64,000 nucleotides of DNA from Pelomyxa schiedti (lineage: Eukaryota > Protista > Evosea). Below are positions 32,438 to 39,900 of the stretch, in pieces; positions within the stretch are counted from its first letter, which is position 1; each line of letters begins with the position of its first letter. The stretch is from contig JAHLWZ010000714.1 in the NCBI GenBank assembly GCA_020536535.1, positions 42,167 through 106,166 of the forward strand. Direction: 5' to 3'. The notes below the pieces were generated by a model. It saw only the letters and a list, made by a program, of their open reading frames with translations. It was not told the DNA's origin and did no database searches. The translations under genes and the position numbers were made by a program.

Positions 32438-33032
32438 TTATAAAGGTTATCGTAGCCATAGAACCGCCGCCTTTCCCCCGCCACCACAACATCGATTGAC
32501 GCTGGACTGTGTGTGGTTGTATTTTGGTAAATTAAAAAAAAAAAAAAACGGTAGAAATTAATTAACAGATACAGATACGAGCCAGCAGCAACCCCCAATG
32601 AAGATGATTGATTTGTTGATGGTAAATAAATATAAGACTGGATGTATCCCTAAGGTCCCCCAAATCCAACCACGTCTCACACAGGTAGTGGTGCCAAAAA
32701 GATTGTCCATTCCAAAAATATTCATTTCATACCCAAAAAAGAATGGTGGAACAATTACGTCCAAGCGTCCCACCGAAGCGTGATTTTTGACTGAAAACAG
32801 TTTGTGAAACAAGTCAATTTTTAATGGTTTTCAACAAGAACACCGATAGGAGAGGTAATATCCATTCCCCACTTTAGGCAAAATTGGGCTCCGGACTCAA
32901 CAGTGGACGCTGGGGGCAAACATTTTTTGGCGGTTGTCCTCCGAGGACTTCCCAGAAAAACATACAAAACGGGAAGGTCGGTGTGTGTTTTTTTTTCTTC
33001 TTTGCCGGATAGGTACCTCTTTCACCACCTTC

Positions 33033-33724
33033 CTGCGGGTAGTGACGTGGGCCGTTGTGGCGACAAGAGAATGTACAGTCGTGTGCCCCCTAGACCGGTG
33101 TTCCCGGATATGCGACACTAGAAGAAGAAAAAAAAATGTTTTTTTTTCCCTTAAACACCCATCAAAGCTTCCCCTACACTCACACTTCAGTCCAACCCAG
33201 GCCTGGGAAACAACACTCGTGCAGGTAATCGTCGCCTGCACACAAGGGGAAGGCTCACCGCTTCAAGAGACACTGTCCCCCTGATGGCCACTTTCCAGAA
33301 AACCTGGATTATTTTTTTCCTCTTTGACTGTCGCAAATCCGGCACCACCGGCTTTGGGGGCAAACTACTCCTCTTGTACCCGCAATCACAACGAGCCACG
33401 TCACAGTTCACAGTTTGCAGCCCAAGGAGTCTCGGTCAGGGAAAAGGAAAGAAAAAAGCATTTTTTCGCGAACATCAGATCACCCACTCACCTAGTAGCC
33501 GGAGGAAGGGAAGCGCTCAAGCCCTCTGCGTTCAGATGCACGTGCACTCTCATGCCATTCCTTGCGCCTCCCAGCTCCTCCAAGTCTCAAGCTGGACTGT
33601 GATTGTAGCGGAAGCAGACCTTTTTTTTTCCTCTTCAGGTGTCGCAAATCCAGCATCACCGGTCATGGGGGCAAACAGCTCCGCTTTGGGATGCGAATAC
33701 AATGCCCCACGTCACGACCCACAG
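33033..33724. repeat. Three 85-bp modules with conserved blocks at invariant spacing (33033-33117 inverted; 33329-33413 and 33640-33724 direct)
   Basis: Consensus TGTCGCAWATCCRG-N3-CACCGG-N4-GGGGGCAMAC-N22-ACAA-N4-CCACGTCAC-N4-CRCAG, each preceded by a T-run; no indels. Confidence 0.85.
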
Positions 33725-33945
33725 TTTGGTGTCCGCTGCCAGACCCGAGAACCTTTCACCGAACAGATCTAGCCAGAGGCTCAGATCCGGACTTAGACTT
33801 TTAGGTTAAGAGCTTTCTATTGGTAAGTCTATTGGATAGATGTCTTTTCCGGACACTTCTAAGAGTTTTTTTGCCCCCTGTGGGCAATGGATATGGCGAA
33901 ATAAAAAAAACACCAGACCGCCGATCCTGAGAGACAACAAGGAAA

Positions 33946-35322
33946 ATGACAGCGTTCCGGTCTGTTGTTTCTACAGTGGTTTGCAAAAGTAGGGTAAATA
34001 GTGACTGCGTGATCGCAAACAGGGACTTGAATGGACTGGGCATCACACTACCACCACCACCACCTCTTACACAGCAACAAGCATCACGGCCAGCACAACA
34101 GTGGCAAATGCCGGCACAACACTCGCAACAGCTACAACCACAACCGCAACAACTGTTCCACCAGAACTGGGTCATTGCGTGCTATTGCTGTGGCCATCCT
34201 ACAGAGTTGCGGGTAAAGAAAGAATACTCCAGAGGAAAAGGAAAAGAGAAAGACCGGACTCAGGTGAGAATATATTGAATATTCTTTACTTGTTCTTGCT
34301 AATAATTAGCAGAACCAGCAAACTGGAAGCGTCTATGATAGGTTGATGTGCAAGTGTAGGTGCCAAGGACACTTTCCAGATCCTTGTGGAGGTAAGTAGG
34401 CACTGTATTCAATTATGTTGTTCGGCTGCTTACTTTCAGCTTGCGATGACTGCCGTCGATTAATCAATGCTGGGGACTTGTGTGGCTGTGGGTGTGGTGG
34501 CTGTGATCCTGCTGATGATGGAACATGCCAAGGGTGCTTCTGACGACACTGTAGTGGCACAGTGTGCCAGTACGCAATACCTGTTGCCCTTATATTTTTG
34601 TCACATTGTACAGGTTCTGTTCATGTAAATGCGCAGGCTACCCTGACGCTACGGAAAAAGAGTGGCCTGCCTCCAAGGCAGCCGAATTTAATAGAACTCT
34701 TCAGTTCAACCTCTCAAAGCAAGGGGCCAAGCAGGATCTAGCCGGCCTCAGTGAAAACCCAGAACTGCATAATGCTTTGGCTGAGTGTGTGGCAAGCAAC
34801 CCTTTGGCCATGTCTGCACTTACCGAGAGTGTACAGATGAATCTAAGTAAATCTTTTTTAATAATTCCTTTTCACTCAACCACTACAGGAGGAAGATCAA
34901 GTCAATGTGGGCAATCAACTGCTGATTTCATCAGTTCTCTTCCAAAACGAGTGCCACCACCTGCTTTACCTGTTACAGACAAAAACCTGGCTAAACGATT
35001 GTGTACTGACCAGGCACCTCCTGACCCTATAAAAACAACCAAAGGTACCTTCTCATTTACTCTACCCACGCCTCACACTATTGTAGTTCTAATCCAAAAA
35101 CTGAGAAAAATTGCTGGTGCCGAAAATGCTGTGCTATTTCAAGCCATGTTTTCTGTGGTTCATGATTACCAGAGGTTTATTGACCAGTACGACGATGCTG
35201 AAGTTGAAGAAGCCACTCAAGCGGGACTACCCAAAGGCTGTAAAATTAATACGGGAACAACTGAGACAGGAACTACTTCTCGATTGCGGTACAACACCCT
35301 CACCACAAAGTCCATAAACTAA
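33946..35322 (+). CDS. Cys-rich (putative Zn-binding) transposon cargo gene with an in-frame TGA at 34541-34543; start uncertain
   Basis: Spliced frame: ..IACYCCGHP..MCKCRCQGHFPDPCGACDDCRR..LCGCGCGGCDPADDGTCQGCF*RHCSGTVCQFCSCKCAGY.., continuing into ORF 34564-35322. Confidence 0.6.
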
Positions 35323-35362
35323 AAAAAAAATTAAAAAAAAAATTTTTTTTAATTTTTTTTTA
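35320..35362. terminator. A/T palindrome between two convergent stop codons (putative bidirectional 3' end signal)
   Basis: T-A10-TT-A10-T8-AA-T9-A spans the cargo TAA (35320-35322) to the transposase TAA (35360-35362). Confidence 0.45.
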
Positions 35363-36624
35363 ATCTGGGTTTGTGTATGGCGTGTATGGGAGACCAGGAA
35401 CATAGTAGTGGCATGCAGACGCAAATTTCTGTACCAGTGGGCCATCAATTGCAAAAGCGGCCTTGTAAATATGTTGTGCAAGATTCTGTTCTGTTATTTG
35501 ACCAGGTGACTCGCGGAGGCACCTCTTGACTTCAGCAAAGCAAAGCTCAATCCAGGCTAGATCAGGTGAGGCTACTGGCCTAAAAAGGGTTGAGGCCTAA
35601 TAAGAAAAGAAAAGACAGACCGCGGTACCAGAAGGTGACCTTCCTGTGCAACTAACGCAAAGATGGAAGGGTGAAGGTGTGCCTTGTGATTGTCCATCAG
35701 TAAAATGCGTTTTTGGCCACGTATTTGCGGGAGTAATACTACAGCAAGCCAAACATAGAATAGTGATGTGTTGAGTGTTCCTGGAAACACAAAACAACCC
35801 AAAGACCCAACATTAACATCAGCCCCCATTATTAAAGTGAGGTGTTTTGATTGTGGTGGCTAAGTTATTATTAGTGCAAGTTTAAGAGAATTGCAAAGAG
35901 GGATGGTGAAACATACATGATGGGTGCGACCAGGTTGACCAGGCAAGGAGTGCCCTTTGCGTCTTGCTGTATCCAACAGGGTGCACCCCATTTCATCTAA
36001 ATCGAGCAATACCTCAACTGGTACACAAAAAATACTAGGGTAATATTAGAATACAGAGTTAGGAAATGAACACAAACCCATGAGGAGTCTCAGTAAGGGT
36101 ATTGGTAAACCAGGCCCGTCGTTGTGCCTATCAGGCATTAGAGGGCAAATGTATCCAGCAGCGACGAACCTCGTTTCTCTCTCCAATAATTTTTCGGGTA
36201 GTAAAACGAAGGTGGAAGCCAAGTTTCTTTATAGCACGGCTGATTTGCCAAAGCCTGACAAACCCCAATATTTAAGAAATACAATACTGAAGAAGGAGAG
36301 ATACTTGCAGAATTCATGTGTTGCCGCGAGCACAACTGTCTGGAGCTCTTTTAATGTTGCTACTGGGTACAAGAGTAAGGTCCAGGCAATCATATAACAC
36401 GCCAAAAAACTCACAGAAAAAGGCCTCCCAGTTCGTTTTCGTACTTCTAATTGAGGTCCTAGCAGGTGGTTTTTGCATGTGCCGTGGTTGAAGTGATCCA
36501 CACCTTGCTGCCGGTACCGGCGTACCATGCTTTCACTCACTCCCTCAATGCGGGCTACGACGCCAACTGATTCGTTCTGATGGCTCAATACCCGTCGGCG
36601 TTTGGCAAGGGGGTAGCAGCTCAT
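35360..36624 (-). CDS. DD34E transposase (IS630/Tc1, DDE_3-like), 5 introns, open after splicing
   Basis: N-terminal HTH (VARIEGVSESMVRRY, TGRP, TLKEL..QISRAIKKLGF); catalytic LLDLDEMG, ILLMDNHKAH, SPDLAWIE with 34 residues between the second D and E. Confidence 0.92.
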
Positions 36625-36947
36625 CTCCTCCCACGATTTTTTTGTTTTTTTTGATTTTTGTTGTATTTTTTTTTGGGTGGTGCGTTGGAAAGGGGGGATG
36701 CAAAAAATAGTGGAAGGCATCGAAGCTTTCCTTGTTTGGCCAGTTGCCTACGACTTCCACATGACCAACATGCCACATCCACCACACAAAATTTTCCAGA
36801 TGCAAAAATTTCTTCAAAAGTTTTTCACGACTTTTGCAAACCACTGCAGAAACAACAGACCGGAACGCTGTCATTTTCCTTGTTGTCTCTCAGGATCGGC
36901 GGTCTGGTGTAAGAGAAACTGTAAGGGGAAAAACGCATAACACTGTT

Positions 36948-39900
36948 ATGGGAAAGCCTGGTGCCACAACGCCGGCACCAAACAAATCGGCGGCAGCTGC
37001 CGAACCACCGAAGCCTAAACCGAGGAAAAGTGTCGTCAAACCAAAGTCGAAGGAGAAACCCACAAACTCGAAAAAGCCGACGAAAATCCCCACCAAACGC
37101 GATGACGCCGTCGTCCCGAAACCGGGCGGGGTCAACCTCGACTCCAGCCTTGTCAGGTGGATTACTGAAATCGGAGCGAACCACGGTGTTGCGCCCCTCA
37201 AATCTGATAGGGAATGGGAACTGTGGCGTGACATTGTCTCCGTGACAAAGAAGATACTGGTCGTGGGGCCCTCTTACCGTATCCAGCTTCCAAACCCCAA
37301 GTTCCACGACCTTCTTGGCCCCCAAAAGAATCAGAACCTCTTCCGTGATAGCAAAAAAGAATGGGACATGGCGCTGAAGAACCAAACCCACGACTACAAG
37401 GCTGAAATCAACGCGTTTATAAAAGAAATTCCTGATGATAAAAAAACTTGGTGGGGAAGCCTCAGGTCCAGAAATTCGAAGTCGAAGATTGCGCGTATCA
37501 TGATTATTCTGCTTCAGTTGAAAAAGTTTCCCCCTTCACAATACCCATACGGTTACATACAACCGAACGCACCACTCAGCAATAATGACAACCCCTCCAT
37601 TTGGAAAGAAGAGCCAAGGAATGTATGGGGTTATCCAACACAAGTGTATGAACAGGTACTGCAATATATAGACCTAAAAAAGGGTTCCAGTTCTCCAATT
37701 GCTTTGATATTTGGACCTCCTGGTTGGTTGTTTTTTTGTGTGATTGATTCTAACATGTTGCTAGGCTCAGGGAAGAAGCATGTAATTCACAAAATACATG
37801 TTGAACTCCAAAGACACTACTTCGTCTTGTCTCATCCTTTTTTTAAAAAGGCAAGCACTGCAGTACAAGGTTCCTTTCCTTTTAGCTCCTCTTTAATTGA
37901 CCAAATTATCAGATAGAAACTTCAAACAATTTATTTTTGTTGTTTTGGTAAAGATTTTAGGTGCATCAATAAACCCTGGGTGAGTGTTTTTCCCTGTGTG
38001 AATATAAAAAGCTAATCCTCTCCAGTGGGTCTCTCATTACAGAAATAACATTTGATGAGATGCAAAATGAAGCAGAAAGCCTGGAACGAGATCAGTCCAA
38101 AGCTTCAATATCTTTTGACGAGCTGGGAGTAGTATTAAAGAAATGCACCAATCCGTTTTCTCTTGTTCTCAATTGTGACATCTTGTTTGAGGTGAGCCTG
38201 CAAAACTCATTTTTACTTTGCCTTATGCATTCTTTCACAAGACAATTTCCTACCATGAGAAAGCCGCAATCATATTGGATGTCCTACATAATGTTCACCA
38301 GTGCTTCAACGACTATGGAATATCCATCATATTAACTGGTTCTGACAAAATTCATTTGTGGAATATAAAGAACGCGTTATCTACATATGATGGCTCGCAA
38401 CTGGTGTGTAATAACTCTGAGTGCAGAAAAGGAACCTCACCTCCTAGAATTCAGGTGTCCTCTCTTACCTTCAGTGAAGTCAAAGTTTGTCTACATAGGT
38501 TTATATCAAGCAGCAGCCCTCTTCTACGTGGCAAGGGCCAACCAAAACTTGTAGAGGCAAGACTTCTTATCACTTTGATATCATAGTTACAACATGTAGA
38601 TTGCAAGAGTCTTGCCTGGTCCGATAGGGATTCTAGCAGCATTCTTTTCATGGTATCATACCGGGAGAAAATTTCTCCATTCCACCATTTTTAGTTATTT
38701 ATTATTTTGTGCAGTATCCAGCGTACCTGCACGGAGGGAACGTATCACTCCCTATCATATTGTGTCAGAGCAGTGTTTGAGGACATGCATCTCCAGTAAT
38801 GGGATTTCTTTTTTTTTTTTTCCCCAACTGAATGAAAGAAAGGTATGATCAACAGGTGCGTGGACCAGAGAGGATTCCTTTTCTGTATGATTACATATTC
38901 ACCGCAATACTGCACCGTGGTTCTAGCTTGATCCAATTGGCTGGGGAAGAGCTACACATAACAATATCAGAAGCTATTGATCCAGAAGGTTATTCGTCCA
39001 ATCTACGAAACAAACACCTCAAGAAAACCAAATCATTAGGCTATTCTACTGCACTTCGCCTGGGTTGTGTACTGAACAAAAGTGGGCTCCTAGATGTAGC
39101 CATTTCCCCCGATCAGGATACATCCAAATCTTTGTTACAAATAAAGTGCATATGCCCTTTTGCTTATGCCGTCATAGCACCATGTGACCCAATGAAAGCT
39201 GTAAGCTACATATTTACACTTTCCACTCGATTTGCCGTTCTACGAAAGCCAATCATGCCTTAATCTAAAATACTAGGATTGCCCATCAGCAGCCATATTA
39301 TTTGGGGTGCCAGAAACTTTAAGTAAACCAAGCTGGCTGGAGAGTACCTCTATCCTTTTAACAAGGTACGATAGTGAATTGAACAAAAAAATATTTTTGG
39401 GAACCGGCTTTGGGTGCCCTGAAGGTTAATTTTTTGTTCCTCTATTTGTCTTAACTTGCACAAGCTCGTCGGCCCCTCATCGTACCTATGAACAAGGAGG
39501 ATCTCACAGAAGTGTTTCTGAAGGACAGTTCAGTGGTGGTCTTAATTAAAGGTTCAACACCACCCATCCTTGTATTTTGTGGAATAAGTAAAGAGGGAAC
39601 GGCTTCCATTATGGGTATCTCACAACCCACTTCGACTTTGTATTTGCTCTTACCCCCCACCCCCCCCAAACAGTGACCTGCTGCCTATTACAGTCGGCAC
39701 GGAACAACCGGGAGATAATAGAAGCAACTCAGTGCTTTCTAACAAGCAACATTAATACGCATGGTACACTAGGCTTTATTCAATGTGAGTGTAACCCTTT
39801 TTTTGAAGGCCTATTGGTTGTTATATGCGAGGATCAACTAGAGATCACACCCGGAGTCACAAGTGAGACTTACGCAACCACTTCGGCACCTTTCAAGTTC

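Follow-up and report, generated by a model that had tools for sequence, protein, structure and literature searches.

Why would a DNA transposon of a superfamily that usually carries a single gene hold two, and where does such an element begin and end? Both questions are raised by a locus in a 64,000-nt stretch of contig JAHLWZ010000714.1 of Pelomyxa schiedti (hereafter the window), in which an earlier note, made from the letters alone, had described a two-gene transposon of the IS630/Tc1 group between nearly perfect inverted repeats. We find that positions 33975–36845 of the window are a copy of a Tc1/mariner DNA transposon, characterized by a TA target-site duplication, CAGTGG termini and a transposase with a DDE_3 domain and DD34E spacing, in agreement with the family assignment of the earlier note. 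The element carries the transposase gene and, convergent to it, a gene for a cysteine-rich protein that we call the cargo. The window copy is decayed: its left terminal inverted repeat (TIR) is truncated, its cargo gene is broken and one target-site copy is mutated, so that the transposase frame alone is open. The young copies of the family sit on other contigs. Taken jointly, this reading of the locus (identity, layout, decay and a cargo that serves the element as an accessory protein) is in our judgement likely to be right.

Ends and copies of the element

A search of the P. schiedti genome (52 Mb in 5337 contigs, each designated here by C and a number) placed the family at five loci:

C714 (the window): both element halves
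C633: both element halves
C511: both element halves
C601: a dead internal transposase fragment
C1607: a single element end, including the cargo start

The identity between the C633 and C511 copies amounts to 99.9%, extends over exactly 3089 nt and stops at unrelated flanks; each of the two copies is 94% identical to the window copy. Since their identity is restricted to these 3089 nt, they represent two recent insertions of the whole two-gene unit. Transposase and cargo co-occur in every full-length copy, which is what the earlier note had expected of a genuine two-gene transposon. Both ends of C633 and C511 read TA|CAGTGGTTTGC..., as does the single visible end of C1607, and homology between these copies and the window stops at 33991 and 36846, short of 33910 and 36910. 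Because three other copies end at TA|CAGTGG in unrelated flanks, these are the real ends of the element; in the window they correspond to 33975, with TA before it, and 36845, with CA after it. TA also flanks both ends of a diverged element on C968, and directly inside the TA the TIRs open with a CAGTG/CAGGG-type sequence in both cases (CAGTGGTTTGC... in the window family, CAGGGGAATGCG... on C968). The parts of the window copy that define its ends are the following:

33895–33970, plus strand: left flank, outside the element; partial copy of a ~91-nt miniature inverted-repeat transposable element (MITE), from GGCGAAAT... to ...GGTCTGTTG
33973–33974: left target-site copy, TA; the right counterpart, 36846–36847, reads CA, and intact copies have TA on both sides
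33975–36845: transposon copy with two convergent genes, Tc1/mariner superfamily, Pelomyxa schiedti
33975–33991, plus strand: remnant of the left TIR, CAGTGGTTTGCAAAAGT; C633, C511 and C1607 have a 240-nt TIR here
36610–36845, minus strand: right TIR, ~236 nt here and 240 nt in C633 and C511, where it stands inverted at both ends
36848–36910, minus strand: right flank, outside the element; the inner ~63 nt of the MITE seen on the left, in inverted orientation

The earlier note had drawn the element differently, as a compact, recently active unit of 3001 bp (33910–36910) bounded by TIRs of its own of 81–89 nt. The inverted repeat behind this proposal is real and nearly perfect: its arms, 33910–33998 and 36822–36910, are 89 nt long and 96% complementary, and the outermost 81 nt pair at 80 of 81 positions, the lone mismatch being the CA at the right target site. 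Nevertheless, we regard a mobile unit with these limits as most improbable, because TA|CAGTGG, where the other copies end, lies 64 nt inside these limits, the outer 61 nt belong to a dispersed MITE whose homology continues to the left beyond 33910, and no TA or other duplication was found around 33910 or 36910. Nor does the copy look recently active, with its left TIR truncated, its target duplication reading TA/CA and its cargo gene reduced to a pseudogene. The outer 64 nt on each side, which begin ACACCAGACC..., are thus flank and not TIR, since the same sequence matches the dispersed MITE family, and the 81–89-nt repeat looks long because both flanks are inverted copies of one unrelated MITE sequence.

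Dozens of loci share the 61 nt that start at 33910, at 90–100% identity, and those loci end in a different right arm. The MITE itself is a hairpin-like sequence of ~91 nt that starts with GGCTGAAT or GGCGAAAT and ends with ATTCAGCC; a first look gave 233 candidate copies, and at least 44 matches were scored. The right flank lacks the outer 15 nt of the MITE, and the homology of the left flank runs 15 nt past 33910, to 33895. No MITE sequence lies beside the ends of C633, C511 or C1607. Some MITE copies occur in tandem or as head-to-head pairs (L016, L022 and L028, among loci L003–L030). The MITE ends are unlike the Tc1-like TIRs, and no autonomous partner was identified for this MITE.

How the window copy came to stand between inverted MITE flanks may be accounted for in two ways, by landing in a pre-existing inverted MITE pair or by a later rearrangement. 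Under the former, the unoccupied palindromic site would read ...GTTGTTTC TA GAAACAAC.... A short linker (TTTC), identical on the two sides, connects each flank to the element, and the junction word GGTCTGTTGTTTCT has four further genomic matches. A chimera arising in assembly or in multiple displacement amplification was rejected as the source of the flanks, as the contig runs into unique DNA on both sides.

Two convergent genes with mirrored starts

The two genes and the lesions of the window copy are arranged as follows:

33992–35322, plus strand: cargo pseudogene, exon structure taken from the sister copies
Cargo exons, plus strand: to 34263; 34313–34391; 34440–34569; 34614–34846; 34889–35044; 35087 to the end
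34541–34543, plus strand: in-frame TGA in cargo exon 3, a sense codon in the sister copies
35213, plus strand: one extra base relative to C633 and C511, which frameshifts the last ~35 cargo codons
35320–35362: A/T-rich palindrome with arms 35320–35339 and 35343–35362, 90% complementary
36624–35360, minus strand: transposase gene, open, 343 codons, five GT-AG introns (50, 42, 43, 57 and 41 nt)
Transposase exons, minus strand: 36624–36305; 36254–36170; 36127–36078; 36034–35917; 35859–35621; 35579–35360

In C633 and C511, the inward-reading gene on each side starts inside the 240-nt TIR: its ATG and opening five codons (MSCYP) lie at the inner end of the repeat. The intact layout is therefore a mirrored one, in which each TIR comprises an upstream region, a transcript start that precedes the ATG by about 4 nt, and the ATG itself with the opening five codons. 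As a result of these TIR-borne starts the cargo and transposase proteins begin identically: the intact cargo (deposited protein P0002) and our transposase model both start with MSCYP. The window retains half of this arrangement, the right TIR carrying the transposase ATG at 36624–36622; some 215 nt of the inner left TIR, cargo ATG included, are missing. At their other ends the genes meet, and the stops at 35320–35322 (TAA) and 35360–35362 (TAA, reverse strand) lie 37 nt apart across the A/T palindrome, exactly as had been noted before; in intact copies the gene ends are about 40 nt from each other. This palindrome is likely to be the shared 3′-end region of both genes; RNA contigs of one gene end at 35298–35309 and those of the other start at 35373.

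The transposase of the window had been read as a five-intron DD34E gene that is open after splicing, and this description holds. The spliced model contains the motifs LDLDEMG, LLMDNHKAH and SPDLAWIE, with 34 residues between the second Asp and the Glu; the count depends on the 41-nt intron, which RNA confirms, and the spacing is equal in the aligned sister lineages. The same frame is open in C633 and C511. Databases were searched with the window transposase exon by exon, the joined model being used for frame checks, substitution analysis, locus comparison and the tree. Exon 5 alone matches DDE_3 in Pfam (E 2.5e-6) with 27.8 bits, just below the cut-off of 28.6, which the uninterrupted open reading frames (ORFs) of sister lineages exceed (44.5 bits for C1578, 36.4 bits for C968). 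Exon 1 of C968 matches the helix-turn-helix (HTH) family HTH_7 with 24.3 bits against a cut-off of 23.8, together with many weaker HTH families; exon 1 of the window gave only a MerR HTH at E 0.05. The sole sequence match of the transposase in the PDB is the catalytic domain of Sleeping Beauty, and it is weak. A word search with a 154-aa transposase ORF returned nothing inside the length window of that search and is uninformative.

More than 62,000 combinations of GT-AG introns leave the cargo frame open, and openness after splicing is by itself weak evidence; our gene models rest instead on sister copies, RNA contigs and deposited proteins. On this basis the second spliced, Cys-rich gene of the earlier note is genuine, convergent and spliced in RNA, although what the window holds of it is not intact. 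Its only ATG there (33946) lies in the flanking MITE, a TGA interrupts exon 3, and every exonic indel between copies has a length divisible by three except the extra base at 35213. With the proper ATG lost, an in-frame TGA and a frameshift, the window cargo is therefore a pseudogene. The stop of the true frame is at 35315–35317. P0002 has 369 aa and 25 Cys, its gene has five introns, and P0001, the 313-aa protein model deposited for the window, leaves out the TGA stretch. RNA contigs carry the letters of the sister copies at 34539–34541. Reassignment of TGA was considered and rejected, given that the corresponding codon of the sister copies is a sense codon and that the genes use TAA as their stop.

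Purifying selection acts on both genes. In a comparison of the window with C633, the ratio of non-synonymous to synonymous substitution (dN/dS) is 0.20 for the transposase (24 changes at 245 synonymous sites, 16 at 784 non-synonymous sites; Fisher p 6e-7) and 0.32 for the cargo (22 at 215 and 26 at 754, respectively; Fisher p 2e-4). Apart from the single frameshift at 35213, the exonic indels between these two copies measure 3, 6 and 3 nt, and the remaining indels, of 1, 2 and 4 nt, all fall within the proposed introns.

Splicing of both genes, as proposed before, is seen in RNA for four of the five introns of each. The RNA consists of contigs from two single-cell RNA-seq runs of one study, which show presence and not absence. 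Joints with GT-AG borders were found for the cargo at 34264–34312, 34570–34613, 34847–34888 and 35045–35086, and for the transposase (CT-AC on the plus strand) at 36304–36255, 36169–36128, 36077–36035 and 35620–35580. The letters of this RNA are mainly of the C633/C511 type, few pieces being identical to the window. One cargo contig, from run X4, begins with a 22-nt tag followed by 19 nt of TIR, which puts the 5′ end of the transcript 4 nt upstream of the ATG. This tag, which we take to be the reverse complement of the SMART template-switch oligo, abuts position 36628 (and the mirrored left TIR of C633 and C511), pointing to a 5′ untranslated region of ~4 nt.

Age of the partnership and possible role of the cargo

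How old is the association of the two genes? The genome of P. schiedti contains a clade of related transposases that are 45–67% identical in their catalytic part. One of these elements, on C968, is complete: it has TA|CAGGGGAATGCG ends, 206-nt TIRs that are 95% identical and a Cys-rich gene convergent to the transposase, and both ATGs lie just inside the TIRs. Cargo homologues stand convergent to transposases of ~45–55% identity on C968, C1578, C449 and C572, the matches on the last three being collinear and placed alike relative to the transposase. At least five diverged lineages within the genome have the cargo, and when the transposase tree is rooted at its midpoint, such lineages occur in either half. 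A search through 5.8 billion proteins with a profile of the cargo returned only four matches, all from P. schiedti (P0002, P0001, P0004 from C968 and P0005 from C1578), and an exhaustive HMMER scan of 1.84 billion representative proteins with P0002 found only P0001 and a fragment, none outside P. schiedti. A further cargo sequence, at C1695:299–799 (L061), is 94–100% identical to the C968-type cargo (L063, C968:1680–2485) with an internal deletion of ~236 nt. No transposase was found in the 1.3 kb downstream of it, and this copy looks like a non-autonomous derivative that keeps the cargo part only.

The aligned proteins P0002, P0004 and P0005 (alignment A6) share ten invariant Cys and one invariant Trp. 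Motifs that recur are C-x-C-x-C...P-C-x-G, C-x2-C-x9-10-(L)C-x-C, C-x2-C-x4-C and C-x-C-x-C-x8-10-H-x2-W, and beyond the Cys region (residues 105–185 of P0002) the C-terminal half is helical and conserves a V..Y(Q/E) motif. MAFFT misregistered exon fragments, in which C-x-C-x-C recurs three times, and alignments per exon together with the deposited full-length proteins were used instead. Pfam gave nothing at E values up to 10 with the whole cargo, with cut-out domains or with two diverged homologues; a feature search of the ESM Atlas gave no usable match to the whole cargo or to residues 100–190; and sequence and profile searches of the PDB gave marginal matches only. AlphaFold2 models of P0002 reached a mean confidence (pLDDT) of 36.8 alone and 38.8 with a 10-row alignment, too poor for a fold search.

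By virtue of its Cys cluster, the cargo would be a metal-binding accessory protein that serves the element and not the host; the Zn binding and the part in targeting or anti-silencing that the earlier note proposed are likewise hypothetical. What it does for the element is a matter of graded possibilities. That it is a transposition cofactor is possible, and we suggest it tentatively; it would then act with the transposase at the long TIRs, by analogy with mudrB or with the Myb-like partner of PIF/Harbinger. It is less probable, and on balance rather doubtful, that it works as a regulator, such as a brake on copy number, or as an adaptor to chaperones, chromatin remodellers or anti-silencing factors. 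Pointing in this direction, a PDB search with the three-sequence profile (A6) gave two marginal matches, one to the HIT zinc finger of ZNHIT2 (1x4s_A, E 0.069), with which the C968 homologue also agrees in that its CPRC..PYC aligns with the HIT consensus, and one, with E 8e-4 and a length of 90 residues, to the helical N-terminal part of human tuberin. HIT fingers are protein–protein interaction modules, and the transposase probably already has an HTH of its own. However, the profile consists of three sequences, and Pfam supports neither match, giving no zf-HIT or tuberin at E 10 on the cut-out regions.

A cargo captured by chance from the host (transduplication) and without a role for the element would be in keeping with the absence of any recognisable transposon-related domain in the protein, and capture of this kind is common in other superfamilies of DNA transposons. 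We nonetheless consider it very unlikely here, as no cargo copy outside elements was found in the genome, the gene is found convergent and at an equivalent place in five or more lineages with transposases of no more than 45–55% identity, it evolves under purifying selection and its start lies in or beside a TIR. Fanzor genes are known inside Tc1/mariner elements, and a nuclease partner of the TnpB/Fanzor or another type therefore had to be weighed as well. To this we give practically no credence: in 369 aa there is no RuvC-like motif or TnpB feature, Pfam gives no match, no relative appears among the 1.84 billion proteins, and the prediction of secondary structure shows helices after a Cys cluster. 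On this point the earlier note had come to the same view.

Several observations weigh against the favoured reading, in which the locus is a decayed copy of a two-gene Tc1/mariner element whose cargo serves the element. The cargo has received no assignment from Pfam, the PDB, the ESM Atlas or structure prediction. As to the age of the partnership, the transposase tree has no outgroup to root it, and neither C753 nor the second copy on C572 has a significant cargo match in the ~1.2 kb of its cargo side. The RNA contigs show a fully productive mRNA of neither gene. Cargo intron 2 (34392–34439) is retained in the contigs of both runs, which creates an in-frame TAG. In the transposase contigs the 57-nt intron is replaced by one of 136 nt (35781–35916, with the acceptor at 35781), which drops 79 coding nt and shifts the frame, and one transposase contig also removes 36414–36363 (52 nt), leading to a stop after 70 codons.

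These RNA forms can be set beside what the copies have conserved. The protein encoded by the 79-nt stretch is conserved across lineages and aligns to the DDE_3 profile, and the stretch differs from that of C633 only by three synonymous changes. It is coding-like, and the 343-codon model is therefore the selected one. The position and phase of cargo intron 2 are conserved, by sequence, in the C968 homologue. It may be that productive isoforms are rare, or that splicing limits expression; the alternative transposase introns could reflect control at the level of splicing or plain mis-splicing. In the contigs that retain cargo intron 2, the other four introns are removed, and an ATG at 34415 within this intron is in frame with exon 3. 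The extra 52-nt splice in the transposase would leave a 70-aa N-terminal peptide with the presumed HTH.

With regard to the surroundings of the window copy, an open frame of ~320 codons (MGKPGATT...) at 36951–37916 starts 40 nt to the right of the MITE flank. The frame is a probable host gene, and its upstream region is therefore where the transposon copy and the adjoining MITE sequences are located. Nested inverted repeats (33026–33058 with 33699–33731, and 33081–33139 with 33618–33676) directly precede the element, and this 33026–33731 segment may be another small mobile element.

Relation to known transposons

With the DD34E elements Tc1, Tc3 and Sleeping Beauty, the P. schiedti element shares the TA duplication, CAGTG-type termini, the DDE_3 domain, the 34-residue spacing and, probably, an N-terminal helix-turn-helix. 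Its TIRs also resemble in length those of Tc3 and of elements of the inverted repeat/direct repeat (IR/DR) type, which measure ~200–240 nt; internal repeats of the IR/DR type were sought in them, and nothing convincing and no two-site pattern was found. In contrast to these elements, it adds a conserved gene that is convergent to the transposase, starts both genes in or at the TIRs, has five introns in each gene and reads SPD[LFM]AWIE in place of the usual SPDLNPIE. A single gene is a usual and not a defining property of Tc1/mariner, and the P. schiedti family, which departs from it, is filed as a variant.

Outside the superfamily, maize MuDR encodes a transposase and a helper of unclear function in convergent orientation, each driven from a TIR of ~200 nt. 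MuDR differs in its transposase superfamily and in its 9-bp instead of TA duplication, mudrB is unrelated to the cargo, and the C633-type TIR goes further than that of MuDR in that it even includes the ATG and five codons. PIF/Harbinger is a DDE transposon whose second protein is needed together with the transposase, and we deem it the likeliest functional model for the cargo. Yet Harbinger elements make 3-bp TAA duplications, belong to another transposase clade and have a SANT/Myb partner, whereas the cargo has a Cys cluster and no Myb signature.

The TBE/Tec elements of ciliates are members of the same superfamily and are reported to carry extra genes, including one for a zinc-finger protein, under purifying selection (PMC4724952). 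They differ in being telomere-bearing and tied to ciliate genome rearrangement, and in having three genes in another layout without mirrored starts; their proteins have no detectable sequence relation to the cargo. What is already known therefore comprises two-gene transposons with promoters in their TIRs (MuDR) and multi-gene relatives of Tc1/mariner in ciliates (PMC4724952). To our knowledge, and after a limited literature search, a Tc1-like DD34E lineage that combines a conserved convergent partner gene with starts embedded in its TIRs has not been reported. The suggestion of the earlier note that the family is undescribed is plausible, the cargo having neither RuvC or TnpB features nor known relatives. 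More specifically, there is a real but less than even chance that these elements form an undescribed Tc1/mariner clade of Archamoebae, with an obligatory gene for a new Cys-cluster protein that transposition requires or is controlled by, mirrored starts in the TIRs and an output of both genes that is gated by inefficient or alternative splicing.

What may be learned from this family? For annotation, two corrections follow: the deposited model Pelo_9105 is a patched pseudogene, and what looks like an 89-nt TIR is a false appearance created by the MITE flanks. The cargo family, without detectable relatives, is a clean target for biochemistry, and the start codons embedded in the TIRs illustrate a way for a transposon to drive two genes with a single promoter sequence present twice. 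In textbooks, Tc1/mariner elements exemplify the transposon that requires nothing but its transposase, hence their use as gene-transfer tools. That a second gene has been kept under selection while the transposases diverged to ~50% identity suggests that the superfamily has a requirement or a control step that has gone unrecognised.

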